The notes beneath the pieces were generated by a model. That model had not been told where the DNA came from, searched no databases, and worked only from the letters and a program-made list of their open reading frames with translations. A DNA stretch of 63,627 nt, counting the filler, from Cercozoa sp. M6MM (lineage: Eukaryota; Protista; Endomyxa: Ascetosporea), in the NCBI GenBank assembly GCA_040357565.1. It is 16 parts of 16 records of this genome, joined end to end, with 100 filler letters (N's around TTAATTAATTAA, not from the genome) between each part and the next. Parts side by side here need not be neighbours in the genome. Positions count along the whole stretch, not along the records: positions 52,029 to 57,256 come from JBDODJ010000942.1; 15 more parts are not named here. One strand, 5' to 3'. A program made the translations under genes and the position numbers. Of the stretch, positions 51,929-57,409 are shown one piece after another; the first letter of the stretch is position 1, and every line of letters starts with the position of its first letter.

Positions 51929-52046
51929 NNNNNNNNNNNNNNNNNNNNNNNNNNNNNNNNNNNNNNNNNNNNTTAATTAATTAANNNNNNNNNNNNNNNN
52001 NNNNNNNNNNNNNNNNNNNNNNNNNNNNCCCCCCCCCCCCCCCAGG

Positions 52047-53189
52047 ATGCGTTGCTGCTGCAACGTTGGAACGAGTTGACGCAGAAAATCATGTAGTTTA
52101 CCCCTGTCGCCCATCTTACCCCCCATCTTACCCCCCTCTCCCCTGCGAAGGAGTCACCTGCGAGAGGAACCGCAGGAGGCAGCGAAAACGTGGGCCGTCG
52201 TTGCTGAGTTCCATGCTTGTCGTGGTAGGCTTGTTTACCCCCCTCCCCCATCCCTTGACTTTGTGCCTCTCTCCCTCCCTCGGCAGGTGCGAAGGAGGAA
52301 GCCGTGGAGTTCGAACAGCGCTGTTTCCGCGCGTTGACTGCGGTGCCTCGTTGGTTCGACGGTAGGCTTTACCCCCCTCTACCCCCTAGCCCGACACCCC
52401 TACCTCCTCTACCCCCTACCTCTACCCCCTACCCCCTCTACCCCTACCCCTACCCCTACCCCCATATCCCTACCCCAGATGTGGATGCGGCCGAGCACTT
52501 GTTCTCTGCGACGCGCCGTTTGATGTGCTTTACCTGTTTACCCCCACACATTGCCCCCCCTTACCCCCCCCCCCCCCCTCCCAGTGGCCGTTTCGAGGCG
52601 TGCAGCGATCCGAGCAAGTACCGCGTGGCGGCGCGATCGCTCAAGAACGCGCTGCGGCAGTGCGAACCGCGACTCGGCCGCGATCATGCCGAACTGGCCG
52701 AGGTGTGTTCTTACCCCCCCTACCCTACCCCTGCCCTACCGACCTACCCCTACCTAACCCTACCTACCCTACCTAACCCTACCTACCCCTACTCCTACCC
52801 TACCCCTACCTACTCCTAACCCTACCTAACCCTACCCCTACCCCTACCTAACCCTACCTAACCCTACCTAACCCTACCCCTACCTACCTATCCCTACCTA
52901 ACCCTACCCCTACCCAACCGTACCCCTACCTCCTCCTACCTATCCCTACCCCTACCTACCTATCCCGACCCTACCTATCCCGACCCTACCTATCCCGACC
53001 CTACCTAACCCTACCTATCCCTACCTATCCCTACCTATCCCTACCTGTCCCTACCTAACCCTACCCCTGCCCCCTGGCCCTACCCTACCCATGGCGCAGG
53101 TGCGACAGGCGATCGACGACTTCTGCGCCAAGCACAAGCGCGCGCGCCGTCGGCGCGACGACGACGACGCCTACGCCGACTGGCGCTGA
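52047..53189 (+). CDS. C-terminal exons of a helical-repeat protein (TTC27/Emw1-like, tentative)
   Basis: TWAVVAEFH..EAVEFEQRCFRALTAVPRWFD|DVDA..YRVAARSLKNAL..YADWR*; the resemblance is weak. Confidence 0.4.
52712..53090. repeat. Intronic telomere-like degenerate repeat (CCCTA/CCTA/CCTAAC)n
   Basis: About 380 bp of CCCTAC/CCTAAC variants inside a GT...CAG intron. Confidence 0.85.
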
Positions 53190-53329
53190 CTGTGCACGCA
53201 GCTCTAAGTCGCACCAGCATGTAGTACTATCGAGTTTAGTATTCGTTCGTGTGGGGGGGTCTTTAAAGATTCTACTGTCACAAGACTCAAGTGTCAGAAC
53301 TTTGAGTTCTGGCGCTGGTTGAAGCCAAA

Positions 53330-53620
53330 CAAACTGGTCCTAGTCTTAGATTGCAGTATCTCGATGGCATCAGTAGTCTTAGATGTATCTCGATGTCTTA
53401 GCAAACTGATCCTAGACGTGTATCTCGATGTCTAAGCAAACTGATCCTAGGGACGCATCACCGCTGTGTGGAGCGCATGGCATTCAGTAAACTTAGCGCA
53501 ACTTTGTTACAAAGCTGCGCCACCCGGCACCTGAGACGCGCGCACACTCGACGTCGTCGCCAAACTCCTGCGAGACCTCCTACCCTCGTAGATCAGCGTA
53601 TCTCGATGTTGGGCGAATTG
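53330..53620. repeat. Clustered GTATCTCGATG (4 copies) and CAAACTG(A/G)TCCTAG (3 copies) repeats
   Basis: GTATCTCGATG at 53356, 53385, 53420 and 53598. Confidence 0.8.
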
Positions 53621-54119
53621 ATCCGAGTGACGCACGACTGCTGAGCACATGCCAGTGCATCCAGTAGTGCGACTTTGATGCGATCGATCAAGCCACCAGC
53701 TCGATCAGTCAGTTCCGTGGGTTGTCGTGCACTCGTTGATACAATTAGTGGGGCAGTGGCTACACATGAAACTGGAACAGTTCCCCTTGCAGCAACAACA
53801 TTTGTTTGTCTTTTTCCTACCGACTCTGGCCTACAGTACGTTCTCTGGCCTGCTTTAGCCGTTCGTGTGAGTGTTGCTGTGTTTACGTCACCGGGCTTGC
53901 TTTGTTTTTGTTTTTTTGACGTTGTCTGTTGTGCACCGTGGTTTGCTTGATCGACAGTGACCAGACATCATCTGTTATCAGTGTTACTGTGCATATGTGC
54001 CACAGAAGCTCCAGAGCTCGTGTTGTATTTTTGACGCCCTTGCTGAGGTATGTGAAAAGATCAAACAAAAAGAGCCCCACCTGTGTTTTTGTTTTTATCT
54101 GCTGTTGTCAGAGCAAAAA

Positions 54120-55709
54120 ATGGGCCAAAAGAACTCCAAAACCAAACGCTCGGCTGCGTCGCTGATGTCGCTGCAGGGGCAGACTGTACCGGCTTCCTCT
54201 GTTTCCGCTTCTTGTGCTGTGACAGAATGTGCGTGCAAACCAATCAGGTCTCGGACGAGTCGGGTCGCACGCGATGCAGTGTGACAGACACCATTGAGAT
54301 GTTCTGGTGGGACTTTGGTAACTTGACTCTTGTGGAACCAGAGGTACTGCGTCTGGTGTATTACCGGTGTGCGCACAGTGGAGCCCCAGCGCCAGAAGGT
54401 TGGCGAGGTGATCTACCTGCGCTTCTTTGTGGAGCACCCCGAGTACCGCCGCGTGTTCAACAAGCTGCCGCTGAAGCGGCATGCTGCCGTGCTGATGCAC
54501 ATGCTGTCCTCGCTGATTCAGGTAGGCTCGTTTTGTATCAACACACTAAATGTGCACATGTTCACTGGCGTGCCTGTGATGTGGCAGGGCATGAGTGATC
54601 TCAAGACACTCGATCACAAGGTGCGCGAGCTGGGCCAGTACATTTACATTTCTCCGACTTGAACAGTGACTAATGTGTCAAACACGTGCATGTGTAGGCG
54701 CCACATCAGCTACAACGTGCCTCGTGGCGCTTTTTCGCATATGTAGCGTTTCTGCCGTTTGATCTCAAGTTTGTGTTGCAACGGTTTTGTGTTTTTGCAA
54801 AGGACGGAAGCCGTGGTTGCAGGCATGCAGGACGTGTTTGGCGCTGACTTTACGCACTCTGTGCGTTACGCGTTCATCGAGATGCTCAACATGTGCACGG
54901 CGATCATGATCGAGGAGATCGGTGATCAGCCGGAGCGCACCAACTTGACATTTCACAATCCCGTGAGTACCCTGACCTGCCTCGCTTCCTCTCCAGGATT
55001 CGTGAAAACGTGTGGTATCTGACAGAGTACCCGCTGCTGCAGCCGCGCAAGTTTACGCAGTTCCTGGCCGATGCGGATTGCATGAGCTACTTCGAGCTGC
55101 ACCTGGCTCGGTGCTTTTGCTTGTTTTTTCGTTTTTCCCCATCGGAAACAAACGTGTTTGTGTGTACAGTGAGGGCAAGCGCAACTTCATTCTCTTCCTG
55201 GACCAGGTCACAAAGTGGCAGAAGACTCGCTCTCTCATGTATGCTGGCTTGAGGCGTTTGACCATTAGTTTGGTCAGAAAACAAAAAACCAAAAAATGTG
55301 ACGTGCGTGTCATGCCATGCACAGGAAGAAGTCGGACCGCCAAGCACTCGCCGGTGAGATGTTTAACACGTACTTTGCCGACCAAGCTGCCGATCGCATC
55401 AGTGTGGTACTTTTTGCTTGCTGTGTAGCCAGGTTTCGGTCAAAATGGGGGATAAGTTTGGTGTAGCTGGAGGAGTCCTTGCTGGCGACACTGCGTGTGT
55501 CGGTCACGCAAGACGAGATCGCTGATGAGGTGTTTGATGACGTGGCCCATGCCGTGCGCATGCATGTGCGCGACAACCTTCTCGAAGGCTTCCGCCAGAG
55601 TCGCTACTGTCAGGTAGGGGAGACTGCCCCCCCCCCCCCTTCGCGATCTAAAGTTTGCTTTTGTGTCTAGGCACTGATTTCGTCCAAGTTCGAACGGTCA
55701 AGCAAATAG
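54120..55709 (+). CDS. N-myristoylation motif + 3/3 globin + RGS-like domain fusion protein, complete, 11 exons
   Basis: All introns are GT-AG and phase-compatible. MGQKNS; globin FWW..IYLRFFVEHPEYRRVF..KRHAAVL..LGQRHISYNV..F; RGS-like FTQFLAD..YFELHLAREGKRNFILFL..MFNTYF..VFDDVAHAVRMHVRDNLLEGFRQSRYCQ. Confidence 0.88.
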
Positions 55710-56001
55710 ACTGGGGCTCGGAGCCTTTTCTCAAGAACCCTCGACCACAGTGACATGTGTACTATAGCCGACACTCCTTACTGTTCCCAACCGACCCGAC
55801 TCGACACAACCGATACACAGCCTCTCGTCCGTCTGCTGTGTGCTCTGCCCGTCCGAACGCGCTTTTGCGGCCGCTCGTCGTGCTTTTTATTGTTTCATTG
55901 GTAGCACCCGAGCACGCTGTTCCACACCAAAGTAATCCAGCGCTCCTGCTTCGTTTTTGAACAAAAATCCCTTCAGTTACATGCTCTGAGACCCACGTGA
56001 T

Positions 56002-56826
56002 TGTTACGGTAAGGAAACCAGTAACTAAGGTATCGAAGACGACTAAATAAAGGACCAGTCAAGTGCGAAGGGACAAGAGATCCGTAGAAGGAAGCGGGAG
56101 TAGAGATACCTGCAGCAAAGTGCGGGAGCTGTAGAAAGCTTGACCCAAGCTAGGAGTCAGGTTTGCACAACATGACCCAAGCTAGGAATCAGGTCTGCAC
56201 ACCTGACTGTTACAGCATGAACTACTGTATCCGCGCGGAAGCAACCCTAAATTACAACTTAAAAAAATCCTCAAGAGAGGTGTGGACGATTAGTCCAGAC
56301 TGTGTTTGAGTAGGGAAGCCTTGAGCAAGCCTTTTGCAGCTGAACCCAAAGAAGGGCTCTCTCTCGACCAGGTAATCTGATCTCTCCAGTTGGCTTCGCT
56401 TCTACCTGTCCTCTGCCTTTCCAGGGCGCTTCTTTTCTTTACTTCCAACTCAATTGCCATCTGACGGGTGCCTTTCCCGTCCACCACCAGTGCTTTGCCG
56501 CCCAACTGAACCGTTGGGGTAACTCACTCTTTCAAACTGACACTTGGCCACTCTTCCTCCAAGAACAGACTTTATTACGTTCCTTAGTTTTTTTTTTGTT
56601 TCACTGGCAAAGCACTCTTAATTTACCAAGGCCCGATCCTATCTGAGAGGGCTGCGGTAACATGACTATGCAAGGTAGAAGCCTCAGGATGTAATGCAGG
56701 AGATCCCTAGCAAAACAAGTCCTTCGCTATTAAACCATACTGGTTCAGATTTGATCGTCCGCGCTGGCGAGTAACTTAGTCAGTCAGATGACAATTTGAC
56801 TGGTTGGGAAACGCTATGCCGTAACA
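56002..56826. mobile_element. Outer TGTTACGG...CCGTAACA-bounded element containing the nested insertion
   Basis: Perfect 8-bp inverted termini; internal ~32-bp direct repeat at about 56142-56202; no matching TSD. Confidence 0.5.
56208..56662. mobile_element. 455-bp TGT...ACA element with 4-bp TSD (TGAC), copy 2 (internally deleted)
   Basis: Same termini as 23008-23570; TGAC at 56204-56207 and 56663-56666. Confidence 0.88.
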
Positions 56827-56980
56827 TACCAGCTCTCAACCTTAGCAATGCACTCCAATTCTTCTTAGAGATGAGCTGATAGGTGCTTGGTTTCCTAGAA
56901 GACTCAACTAGCTGATAGGTGCTTCCACGCGGAGCAAGCAGTCACGGCAGTAGGTTGTCTGATGTCGACGCCGCGTGTTT

Positions 56981-57246
56981 TAGTGCGCCGACACGAGCGC
57001 GGCCTCGAGGTCCGCCTTGAAGTTCGGTGTCGCAGCTGCCACGCTGCCCTGTGCACAGGGCAGAGGGTTAAGGGTTAAAGGATTAAGGGGGTAAGGATTA
57101 AGGGGAATTAAGGGTAAGGATTAAGGGGGATTAAGGGGTAAGGATTAAGGGGGCAATACATTGGCCTCGGCAGGCAGCATGTCCTTGTGCTCCTCCGGGA
57201 AAACAATGTCCTGCACCGACCACACCGACACGGGCTGGCGGTCCTG
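56981..57246 (-). CDS. Last exons of an unidentified gene
   Basis: DRQPVSVWSVQDIVFPEEHKDMLPAEAN|GSVAAATPNFKADLEAALVSAH*. Confidence 0.5.
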
Positions 57247-57409
57247 TACAACGAGGNNNNNNNNNNNNNNNNNNNNNNNNNNNNNNNNNNNNNNNNNNNN
57301 TTAATTAATTAANNNNNNNNNNNNNNNNNNNNNNNNNNNNNNNNNNNNNNNNNNNNGGGGGGGGGGGGGGTAAAGAGGGGTAAAGGGGTGGGGGTAAAGG
57401 GGGGTAAAA

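Follow-up and report, generated by a model that had tools for sequence, protein, structure and literature searches.

The marine amoeba Lemnamoeba sinaloensis strain M6MM (Rhizaria; listed as Cercozoa sp. M6MM) carries a gene whose product of 319 amino acids joins a predicted lipid anchor at the N-terminus, a predicted heme-binding globin and, as judged by profile and predicted structure, a domain of the RGS family. The gene is nuclear, forms one intact unit rich in introns, and lies on the + strand at positions 54120-55709 of the window, by which we mean the whole stretch of DNA analysed here, 63,627 nucleotides in length with filler included. Heme-based gas sensors with interchangeable outputs are a familiar theme among prokaryotes; the globins of eukaryotes are tied to signalling in ways that are for the most part indirect and disputed, neuroglobin and G-alpha-i being an example. 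The reading that we favor, by analogy and with a probability of about 0.45, is that the protein would be a eukaryotic counterpart of the globin-coupled sensors, in which the state of the heme would modulate an RGS domain held at the membrane. The analysis shows the structure of the gene, its identity with a public record, the assignment of both domains, the residues of the heme pocket and the motif for acylation; acylation as such, heme loading, binding of G-alpha or GAP activity towards it, and coupling between the domains are inferred.

Gene structure and the domain junction

Rebuilding the gene from raw sequence gives a model with compatible phases throughout, in which the spliced coding sequence of 960 nt specifies 319 amino acids and a stop codon. 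Each of the 10 introns begins with GT, ends with AG and measures 57-86 nt, in agreement with the published genome statistics of the organism (13 introns per gene with a mean length of 82 nt, 99.5% of them GT/AG), and the GC3 of the exons is 0.77 as against an intron GC content of 0.40-0.58. The spliced product is letter-for-letter the GenBank entry MES1915571.1 (P0003), a "hypothetical protein" of this species on a contig of 5228 bp, the same length as the present piece, and the gene had therefore already been predicted publicly, though without a name. The sequence-only reading that drew attention to the locus had proposed 11 phase-compatible GT-AG exons and an open reading frame of roughly 300 amino acids, which the rebuilt model bears out; public records do carry an annotation of the gene. 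Searches were run exon by exon, the joined exons being used for the frame check and for comparison to P0003, which then served as the reference sequence for the later work on domains, structure and homologues. Rfam, tRNA and Pfam scans of the gene's flanks returned no match. The features of the gene are as follows.

Whole coding span: 54120..55709, + strand; 11 exons, 10 GT-AG introns, 319 codons plus stop TAG at 55707-55709; locus tag MHM6MM_007496
Exon 1, residues 1-22: 54120..54185, + strand; MGQKNS then KTKR, an N-myristoylation-type motif and basic patch
Exon 2, residues 23-46.1: 54248..54317, + strand; last residues of the N-terminal extension, then the beginning of globin helix A (Trp42, Trp43)
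Exon 3, residues 46-93: 54379..54521, + strand; globin helices B, C and E
Landmarks in exon 3, + strand: Tyr58 (B10) at 54414-54416, Pro66 (C2), Phe72 (CD1) and His80 (E7) at 54480-54482; from translation and the alignment to 3s1i
Exon 4, residues 94-110.2: 54588..54637, + strand; EF region, then helix F as far as Gly-Gln
Exon 5, residues 110-125.2: 54698..54742, + strand; proximal His112 (F8, 54702-54704) and FG corner
Exon 6, residues 125-180.1: 54803..54966, + strand; globin helices G and H, then the first stretch of the inter-domain linker
Exon 7, residues 180-208.2: 55026..55110, + strand; remaining linker and first RGS helices; Pfam RGS start at residue 189, position 55052
Exon 8, residues 208-231.2: 55170..55238, + strand; RGS segment EGKRNFILFL, candidate equivalent of the RGS4 S-E-E-N loop (manual alignment only)
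Exon 9, residues 231-258: 55325..55406, + strand; RGS helix 233-248 and loop 249-260, with Ser257 (55401-55403) as candidate equivalent of RGS4 Asn128; limits from a low-confidence AF2 model
Exon 10, residues 259-307: 55467..55613, + strand; C-terminal RGS helices; Pfam RGS end at residue 306, position 55610
Exon 11, residues 308-319 and stop: 55671..55709, + strand; short C-terminal tail

The linker between the two domains measures about 20 amino acids (about residues 166-185) rather than the ~12 first proposed, and its start is coded by the same exon as the end of the globin (exon 6), with an intron of 59 nt (intron 6) following. Two annotated isoforms, P0004 (second globin half plus RGS) and P0002 (globin plus first RGS exons), both span the domain junction, and the annotation pipeline of the public genome used transcriptome reads. 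Splicing is predicted from the rebuilt model, its agreement with the deposited annotation and these isoforms. The shared exon and these isoforms agree with the initial claim that globin and RGS belong to one gene, and an arrangement of two separate neighbouring genes was rejected on the strength of the one frame over 11 exons, the short intron at the domain boundary and the isoforms across the junction.

It is, in our estimate, exceedingly improbable that the predictor merged two genes, or that the locus is a decaying and unexpressed duplicate, with no globin-RGS protein being made. The gene does sit on a contig of just 5.2 kb in a draft assembly that is fragmented, and the annotated isoforms are intron-retaining forms. 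Against such an artefact stand the unbroken frame with its uniform short introns, the position of the boundary within exons 6 and 7, where the intervening 59 nt leave no space for a stop, a terminator, a promoter or a new start codon, the fact that both alternative isoforms cross the junction, and the GC3 of 0.77, which indicates that coding constraint has been kept. The same 319-residue architecture, moreover, recurs in a second copy (P0001), 93% identical, which lies on an 82-kb contig of the same genome.

The N-terminus and the globin domain

The start of the protein, MGQKNSKTKR, matches the PROSITE-type pattern for N-myristoylation, G-{EDRKHPFYW}-x2-[STAGCN]-{P}, and positions 3-12 contain four basic and no acidic residues. 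This pattern match and charge count agree with what had been noticed at the outset, namely an MGxxxS myristoylation consensus followed by a basic KTKR, and Gly2 is most likely N-myristoylated. Residues 1-34 are predicted to be disordered (AF2 pLDDT <50), and residues 1-39, the MGQKNSK motif included, are unchanged between both genomic copies. The predicted myristate, together with the basic patch, would keep the protein at the inner face of the membrane. Many G-alpha subunits carry the same type of membrane anchor.

The Pfam Globin model (PF00042) matches residues 57-154 of P0003 with a score of 44.7 bits (cut-off 22, E 2.2e-11) over positions 3-111 of the 117 in the profile, and among solved globins those closest in sequence are Hell's Gate globin I (HGbI, 3s1i; E 7.7e-12), HGbRL (3wfw; 2e-7) and neuroglobin (7e-7). 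The HMMER alignment to 3s1i pairs Trp43 with Trp14, Tyr58 with Tyr29 (B10), Phe72 with Phe43 (CD1) and His80 with Gln50 (E7), the B10/E7 naming of the HGbI residues being that of PMC4476040; it also pairs His112 with the proximal histidine (F8) in the LGRRH of 3s1i and identifies Pro66 as C2. The domain is recognised from the assembled protein: exon 3 alone gives a weak Pfam Globin match (E 0.2), and exon 3, intron 3 and exon 4 read through in frame give no Pfam match. The AF2 model was built from a 2-row alignment and has a mean pLDDT of 48.9; only its globin half is usable. There, at moderate confidence (pLDDT 50-80) and with helices at 121-140 and 143-164, it superposes on 3s1i with a TM of 0.89 and an rmsd of 1.5 A, and on the CD-loop-less neuroglobin 7ohd with a TM of 0.86, normalised to the target.

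By profile, alignment and model, residues about 41-165 are thus assigned to a 3/3 globin of the helix-D-less type that is predicted to bind heme. The sequence-only reading had described a full 3/3 globin; its B10, C2, CD1, E7 and F8 landmarks all align, the profile match is above cut-off and the predicted fold matches those of solved globins. That description holds, with the correction that the CD-D region is short and helix D is absent. The combination of Tyr B10, His E7 and His F8 suggests that the heme is likely to be of high affinity or bis-histidyl (hexacoordinate).

The RGS domain and its G-alpha contacts

The second half of P0003 matches the Pfam RGS model (PF00615) over residues 189-306, ending at FRQSRYC, with 47.2 bits (E 3.4e-12, cut-off 23.9) and across profile positions 2-114 of 117; in P0001 the same model scores 35.9 bits. 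An Atlas model of residues 183-312 aligns with RGS clusters of the GRK, R7, RGS12/14-like, SNX13 and Axin types with TM values of 0.81-0.89 over 122-130 residues, both sides of the comparison being predicted models. The profile match above the gathering cut-off and these structural matches argue that residues about 186-307 are an RGS-family domain, as had been supposed when an RGS fold was first read from the DNA. Smaller pieces and the other model are less informative: single RGS exons have no Pfam match, exon-wise sequence searches of the PDB gave chance matches only, and the RGS half of the AF2 model is poor (pLDDT <50). A WW domain in exon 8 was considered and rejected as a chance similarity over 19 residues.

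The G-alpha contact residues can be compared with those of RGS4 only in a manual register, in which at least one RGS4 contact (Arg167) would be Gly, the acidic S-E-E-N loop would be basic, and Ser257 would take the place of Asn128, as in the register proposed initially. In that register, and with helix limits from the low-confidence AF2 model, Ser257 falls near the 9th or 10th position of the loop that joins helices 233-248 and 261-267; in RGS4, Asn128 occupies position 10 of loop 6 (PMC7572916). The residue is Ser in P0003 and Thr in P0001 (S257T). Asn and Ser appear to be a natural alternation at the Asn128 site in active RGS proteins, to judge from the title of Posner et al. 1999 and an RGS19 S156A construct as given in PMC7572916, and the divergence of the contacts is therefore less damning than the sequence-only reading had implied.

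The two copies of the gene differ at 16 of 134 residues in the RGS half and at 3 of 165 in the other (p 5e-4), with the tail coded by exon 11 as the most divergent part (4 of 12 residues). This quicker divergence of the RGS half could reflect relaxed constraint. It is one of the observations that lend some weight to a rather unlikely alternative, in which the RGS domain has no GTPase-accelerating function and is a module for binding G-alpha or for docking of another kind, like the RGS-homology domains of GRK, Axin, AKAP10 and the sorting nexins. The globin would then carry out local chemistry at the membrane (NO dioxygenation, the handling of O2 or reactive oxygen species, or electron transfer), and the fusion would serve placement rather than allosteric sensing. 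Consistent with this, the RGS half comes closest in sequence to SNX13 among proteins of solved structure, at an E value of only 0.036, its structural neighbours include the GRK, Axin and SNX13 types no less than canonical GAPs, the manual register is basic at the acidic contact loop of RGS4 and has Gly at the Arg167 position, and some RGS domains are known to have lost GAP activity and become scaffolds (de Mendoza et al., PMC3971589). On the other hand, the Pfam model is matched nearly end to end and well over its cut-off, and the candidate equivalent of Asn128 is Ser or Thr, Ser being natural there in active RGS proteins of the RZ family (PMC7572916). A working GAP would, furthermore, be expected to share the membrane with myristoylated G-alpha.

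A globin-RGS protein among known systems

The combination of anchor, globin and RGS domain is so far found only in the two near-identical copies of this one species. A word-index search of 5.8 billion proteins, with the full-length protein and with each domain, returned only the protein's own cluster; since the search relies on a word index, distant globin-RGS proteins could be missed. An exhaustive search of 1.84 billion representative proteins with exon 10 (49 amino acids, with little power beyond close kin) recovered P0001 from that exon alone and found no globin-RGS protein outside this genome. A metagenome scan yielded no relative and an Atlas feature search with the whole protein no usable match. 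In the literature searched, neither a globin-RGS protein nor an RGS domain with heme or gas as its input is described; the word "globin" does not occur in the main text of a survey of RGS proteins (PMC3971589), and the supplementary files covered from two genome papers do not mention RGS, G-alpha or globin. These literature and database results are in line with the earlier remark that no characterised protein of this kind was known.

The order of the domains is that of the globin-coupled sensors (HemAT, globin-diguanylate cyclases, globin-histidine kinases), in which a heme globin at the N-terminus provides the input and a signalling domain at the C-terminus the output. Those proteins differ in that their globins belong to the sensor (protoglobin-related) lineage and their outputs are prokaryotic (MCP, GGDEF, kinase, STAS). 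A strict globin-coupled sensor of the sensor lineage was rejected: PF00042 alone was matched, in P0001 with no other family for its globin up to E 10, and the nearest structures are HGbI, HGbRL and neuroglobin. A likeness in layout is offered by HGbRL of Methylacidiphilum infernorum, which ranks third among the solved sequence matches to the globin half and also has an N-terminal globin lacking helix D and with Tyr B10, a linker and a C-terminal domain. The family of that C-terminal domain includes MglB, the GTPase-activating protein for MglA, and HGbRL, a proposed sensor with no proven output (PMC4476040), is thus a precedent for a globin joined to a domain of GTPase-regulator type. It differs in being bacterial, in having a Roadblock/LC7 domain in place of RGS, for which a small Ras-like GTPase, not a heterotrimeric G-alpha, would be the target, in having Gln at E7 where His is found here, and in having no lipid anchor.

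Human neuroglobin provides the other precedent, a hexacoordinate globin (His E7/His F8) whose redox state controls heterotrimeric G-alpha at lipid rafts, the ferric form acting as a GDI on G-alpha-i (PMC4842972). It differs in that it has no RGS domain and works in trans, its action being that of a dissociation inhibitor on the GDP form, whereas here the link to G proteins lies in the domain architecture. One could imagine a clamp in which the two domains work on G-alpha independently, the RGS domain taking the GTP form and the globin, as a dissociation inhibitor like human ferric neuroglobin, the GDP form, with oxidation as the switch. Although neuroglobin is one of the solved globins most closely related to the globin half and the GDI activity of its ferric form on G-alpha-i/o is documented, we regard such a clamp as very unlikely: the activity is specific to mammalian neuroglobin, depends on surface glutamates and is lacking in zebrafish neuroglobin (PMC4842972), and the closest relative overall is a bacterial globin without a link to G proteins.

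Anchored globins have their own parallels in the myristoylated, membrane-bound globin X (PMC3176823) and the redox-sensing GLB-26 of C. elegans (PMC3520999), which bear an N-terminal MGxxxS/T acylation signal and for which roles in redox or signalling, not O2 storage, have been proposed; they are single-domain globins with no signalling domain attached. Protists and plants, too, have membrane-tethered and multidomain RGS proteins, such as the 7TM-RGS protein AtRGS1 and those with DEP, cNMP-binding, kinase or LRR domains, which likewise bring RGS to the membrane and couple it to a lineage-specific input domain. Shuffling of RGS domains is pervasive, and in rhizarians lineage-specific radiations of G-alpha and RGS proteins have occurred (PMC3971589).

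Returning to the favored reading of a globin-coupled sensor analogue, once the heme binds O2 or NO, or is oxidised, the globin's helix H and its CD/E region would shift, and this shift, by way of the linker of roughly 20 amino acids or by dimerisation, would alter the engagement of GTP-bound G-alpha by the RGS domain at the membrane. How long heterotrimeric G-protein signals last, such as those in the motility or taxis of this fish-gill amoeba, would in this way be set by gas or redox state. By analogy with the systems above, gating of G-alpha inactivation by heme is plausible; a complex prediction between the globin domain (with heme) and the RGS domain scored 0.01 and carries no weight either way. 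We are more doubtful that this is the first natural protein to wire a heme gas or redox sensor directly to RGS, with the state of the heme setting GAP activity or affinity for G-alpha.

With globin, RGS domain and putative anchor on one polypeptide, the architecture makes a testable prediction, that the state of the heme controls the deactivation of G proteins, and in practical terms the protein is small (319 amino acids) and the organism culturable. Should the sensor prediction fail, the gene still illustrates how freely RGS domains are shuffled in rhizarians. If it is true, heterotrimeric G-protein signalling would have a gas input independent of receptors, RGS regulation would gain a new class of input and the globin sensors a new class of output, possibly in the form of a compact gas-responsive GAP module, and independent weight would be added to the debated connection between globins and G-alpha that was first proposed for neuroglobin.

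A single spliced gene for a globin and an RGS domain

The piece of the window at 52029–57256 is eukaryotic and intron-rich, and three-frame reading combined with a splice model places the globin-RGS gene within it.

54120–55709, + strand: globin-RGS gene, 11 exons; start ATG at 54120, stop TAG at 55707–55709

The splice model gives a coding sequence of 960 nt with all exon phases compatible, translating to 319 aa, and all 10 introns (57–86 nt) are bounded by GT..AG, with donors that are mostly GTA or GTG. GC3 is 0.77 in the exons against a total GC of 0.40–0.58 in the introns, and this contrast, together with the compatible phases, argues that the frame is no chance concatenation. The spliced product is identical at every residue to the deposited protein MES1915571.1, so that the 11-exon model is the deposited annotation; the sequence-only reading, which had proposed 11 phase-compatible GT-AG exons forming one frame of about 300 aa, was real and exact in this respect. 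The gene is thus already present in GenBank, labelled only 'hypothetical protein', with neither a name nor any discussion.

B12.2 and G7.0 are the classical conserved intron positions of globin genes. The globin introns here follow codons 46 (phase 1), 93 (phase 0), 110 (phase 2) and 125 (phase 2), and by our own estimate of the helix numbering none of the four lies at either classical position, the nearest being intron 5 (54742/54803), about one codon past G7 on that estimated count.

Several observations argue for one gene rather than two. Exon 6 encodes globin helices G and H and runs on into the linker, exon 7 encodes the rest of the linker and the start of the RGS domain, and the junction, where a 59-nt intron separates the two, holds no stop and no further start. 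A second copy in the same genome has the same 319-aa layout, and alternative isoforms from both loci span the globin/RGS junction. The isoform MES1915570.1 (257 aa) retains intron 3 (54522–54587; 66 nt, in frame and stop-free) and is read from Met85, so that it holds the second half of the globin and the RGS domain but neither the distal His80 nor helices A to C of the globin; the isoform of the second copy holds the globin and the first two RGS exons. In funannotate, additional isoforms derive from transcript alignments, and the M6MM annotation was made by funannotate train/predict/update with transcriptome reads, which indirectly indicates that globin and RGS domain are expressed as one mRNA.

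The gene structure fits the published statistics of the M6MM genome (13 introns per gene, mean intron 82 bp, 99.5% GT/AG). Strain M6MM, recently given the name Lemnamoeba sinaloensis, is a marine amphizoic amoeba from triggerfish gills that belongs to the Apofilosa within Rhizaria (PMC11069148, PMC13746701). The draft contigs of this genome are reported to be broken by many simple-sequence repeats, and the C-rich microsatellites of the present piece, together with the poly-C run on which it opens, fit that report. The repeats fill the introns of neighbour-gene fragments at 52029–53189 (+) and 56983–57256 (-) and are missing from the globin-RGS introns except for a C12 run in intron 10 (55627–55640). 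The gaps flanking the gene, 53190–54119 (~930 bp) and 55710–56982 (~1270 bp), are both several-fold above the 162 bp reported as the genome's median intergenic distance; Pfam, Rfam and tRNA searches of the two gaps gave no match, and they may represent long UTRs, unannotated genes or non-coding genes.

Repeats around the globin-RGS gene
52374–52476 and 52717–53065, + strand neighbour gene: CCCCTA and ACCTAACCCT units
53384–53450, upstream gap: 35-bp unit, two copies
56141–56201, downstream gap: 32-bp unit, two copies
57064–57153, - strand neighbour gene: complementary GGATTAAGGG units

Domain assignment and fold

Single exons are too short to assign to families: in an exon-wise Pfam search exon 3 reached Globin at E 0.2 only, and each of the four RGS exons gave no match. 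The spliced protein, in contrast, matches Globin (PF00042; residues 57–154, profile 3–111 of 117, 44.7 bits, E 2.2e-11) and RGS (PF00615; residues 189–306, profile 2–114 of 117, 47.2 bits, E 3.4e-12), both beyond the Pfam curated cut-offs, and the second copy shows the same two families and no further one up to E 10. The solved structures nearest to the globin half are Hell's Gate globin I (HGbI, 3s1i; E 7.7e-12), the globin of HGbRL, a globin-Roadblock/LC7 protein of Methylacidiphilum infernorum (3wfw; E 2e-7), and neuroglobin (E 7e-7). Alignment to HGbI places Tyr58 on Tyr29 (B10), Pro66 at C2, Phe72 at CD1, His80 on Gln50 (E7) and His112 on the proximal His, bearing out the full 3/3 globin, with these key residues, described from sequence. 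Just eight residues separate CD1 from E7, which implies that helix D is absent, a hallmark of the HGbI/HGbRL group (PMC4476040).

An AF2 model built on a two-row alignment is poor overall (pLDDT 48.9) and unusable for the RGS half; its globin part (pLDDT 50–80) superimposes on 3s1i (TM 0.89) and on a neuroglobin lacking the CD loop (TM 0.86). The ESM Atlas holds its own model of exactly this protein (pLDDT 0.76), whose residues 183–312 reach TM 0.81–0.89 over 122–130 residues against RGS domains of the GRK, R7, RGS12/14-like, SNX13 and Axin-type clusters. Profile and fold evidence therefore concur for both domains, and the reading of a globin followed by an RGS fold is right.

A second copy and the search for relatives

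An exhaustive phmmer search with exon 10 (49 aa, a short query) against 1.84 billion representative proteins returned one match, the second copy (319 aa, 94% identical over the exon), whose 90% cluster consists of four GenBank records, all from Cercozoa sp. M6MM.

Records in the cluster
MES1909454, MES1909455: locus MHM6MM_002187, 82-kb contig
MES1915571, MES1915570: locus MHM6MM_007496, 5228-bp contig, equal in length to the piece 52029–57256

The two full-length proteins, which are either alleles or paralogues, are 93% identical and differ at 21 residues, with 3/165 differences in the N-terminus and globin against 16/134 in the RGS domain and tail (Fisher p 5e-4). This faster change of the RGS half may reflect either weaker constraint or copies diverging in partner choice.

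Full-length and per-domain word-index searches of 5.8 billion proteins, which distant relatives could escape, found the same cluster only, a metagenome scan found no relative, and an Atlas feature search with the whole protein gave no usable match. The literature search found no paper joining a globin domain with an RGS domain, the co-mentions concerning neuroglobin, AKAP10 or unrelated topics. RGS domain shuffling is pervasive and rhizarians have an RGS radiation, and the main text of the eukaryote-wide survey of RGS architectures reporting this does not mention globin (PMC3971589). These results accord with the initial statement that no characterised globin-RGS protein was known; given the reach of the searches, 'unique' here means not found, rather than absent.

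Membrane anchoring and engagement of G-alpha

The N-terminus, MGQKNSK, conforms to the pattern for N-myristoylation, with Gly2, Ser6, no charge at position 3 and a residue other than Pro at position 7; of positions 3–12 four are basic and none is acidic, so that the consensus and basic stretch noted earlier hold up as predicted acylation. Myristate followed by a basic cluster is the arrangement of Src-type anchors. Residues 1–34 are predicted to be disordered in the AF2 model, and residues 1–39 are invariant between the two copies.

The contact residues of the RGS domain were compared with RGS4 by a manual register, which is weak. On that register the C-terminal helix presumably aligns without gaps and keeps F-D...F..S..Y, RGS4 Asp163 and Arg167 are taken to be replaced by Asn295 and Gly299, and we assume that the S-E-E-N loop of RGS4 corresponds to G-K-R-N, the position of the Asn being tentative. 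A candidate for the equivalent of RGS4 Asn128 is Ser257, at about the 9th–10th position of the loop between helices 233–248 and 261–267; in RGS4 itself Asn128 occupies the 10th position of loop 6 (PMC7572916). Asn and Ser alternate naturally at this site, as indicated by the title of Posner et al. 1999 and by an RGS19 S156A construct, both cited in PMC7572916. In the second copy the residue is Thr (S257T). On this register the domain could be either a working GAP of unusual selectivity or a binding-only module; we consider the scaffold reading less likely than not.

Globin-coupled sensors have the same order, heme domain first and signalling domain second, but their globins belong to the sensor lineage, whereas this one comes from the ordinary PF00042 lineage. 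Among described proteins HGbRL is the closest parallel, with a very similar globin but fused to Roadblock/LC7, a family that includes a GAP of a small GTPase, and in its crystals the CE loop and helix E shift widely in response to ligand (PMC4476040). In animals, neuroglobin in its ferric state is a dissociation inhibitor that binds G-alpha-i-GDP (PMC4842972), and membrane-located myristoylated globins include globin X (PMC3176823) and the redox-sensing GLB-26 (PMC3520999). With this layout and these precedents, the most economical model would be a heme sensor tethered to the membrane, in which heme ligand or redox state might tune how the attached RGS domain engages G-alpha-GTP. Tyr B10 and His E7 suggest either tight ligand binding or bis-histidyl coordination, and HGbI, the closest solved relative, switches between hexa- and pentacoordination upon lipid binding (PMC11203436), a lead of interest for a lipid-anchored protein. 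Gas-gated regulation of G proteins is a plausible but hypothetical function with good precedents; the architecture itself is a so far undescribed variation both on globin-coupled sensing and on multidomain RGS proteins.
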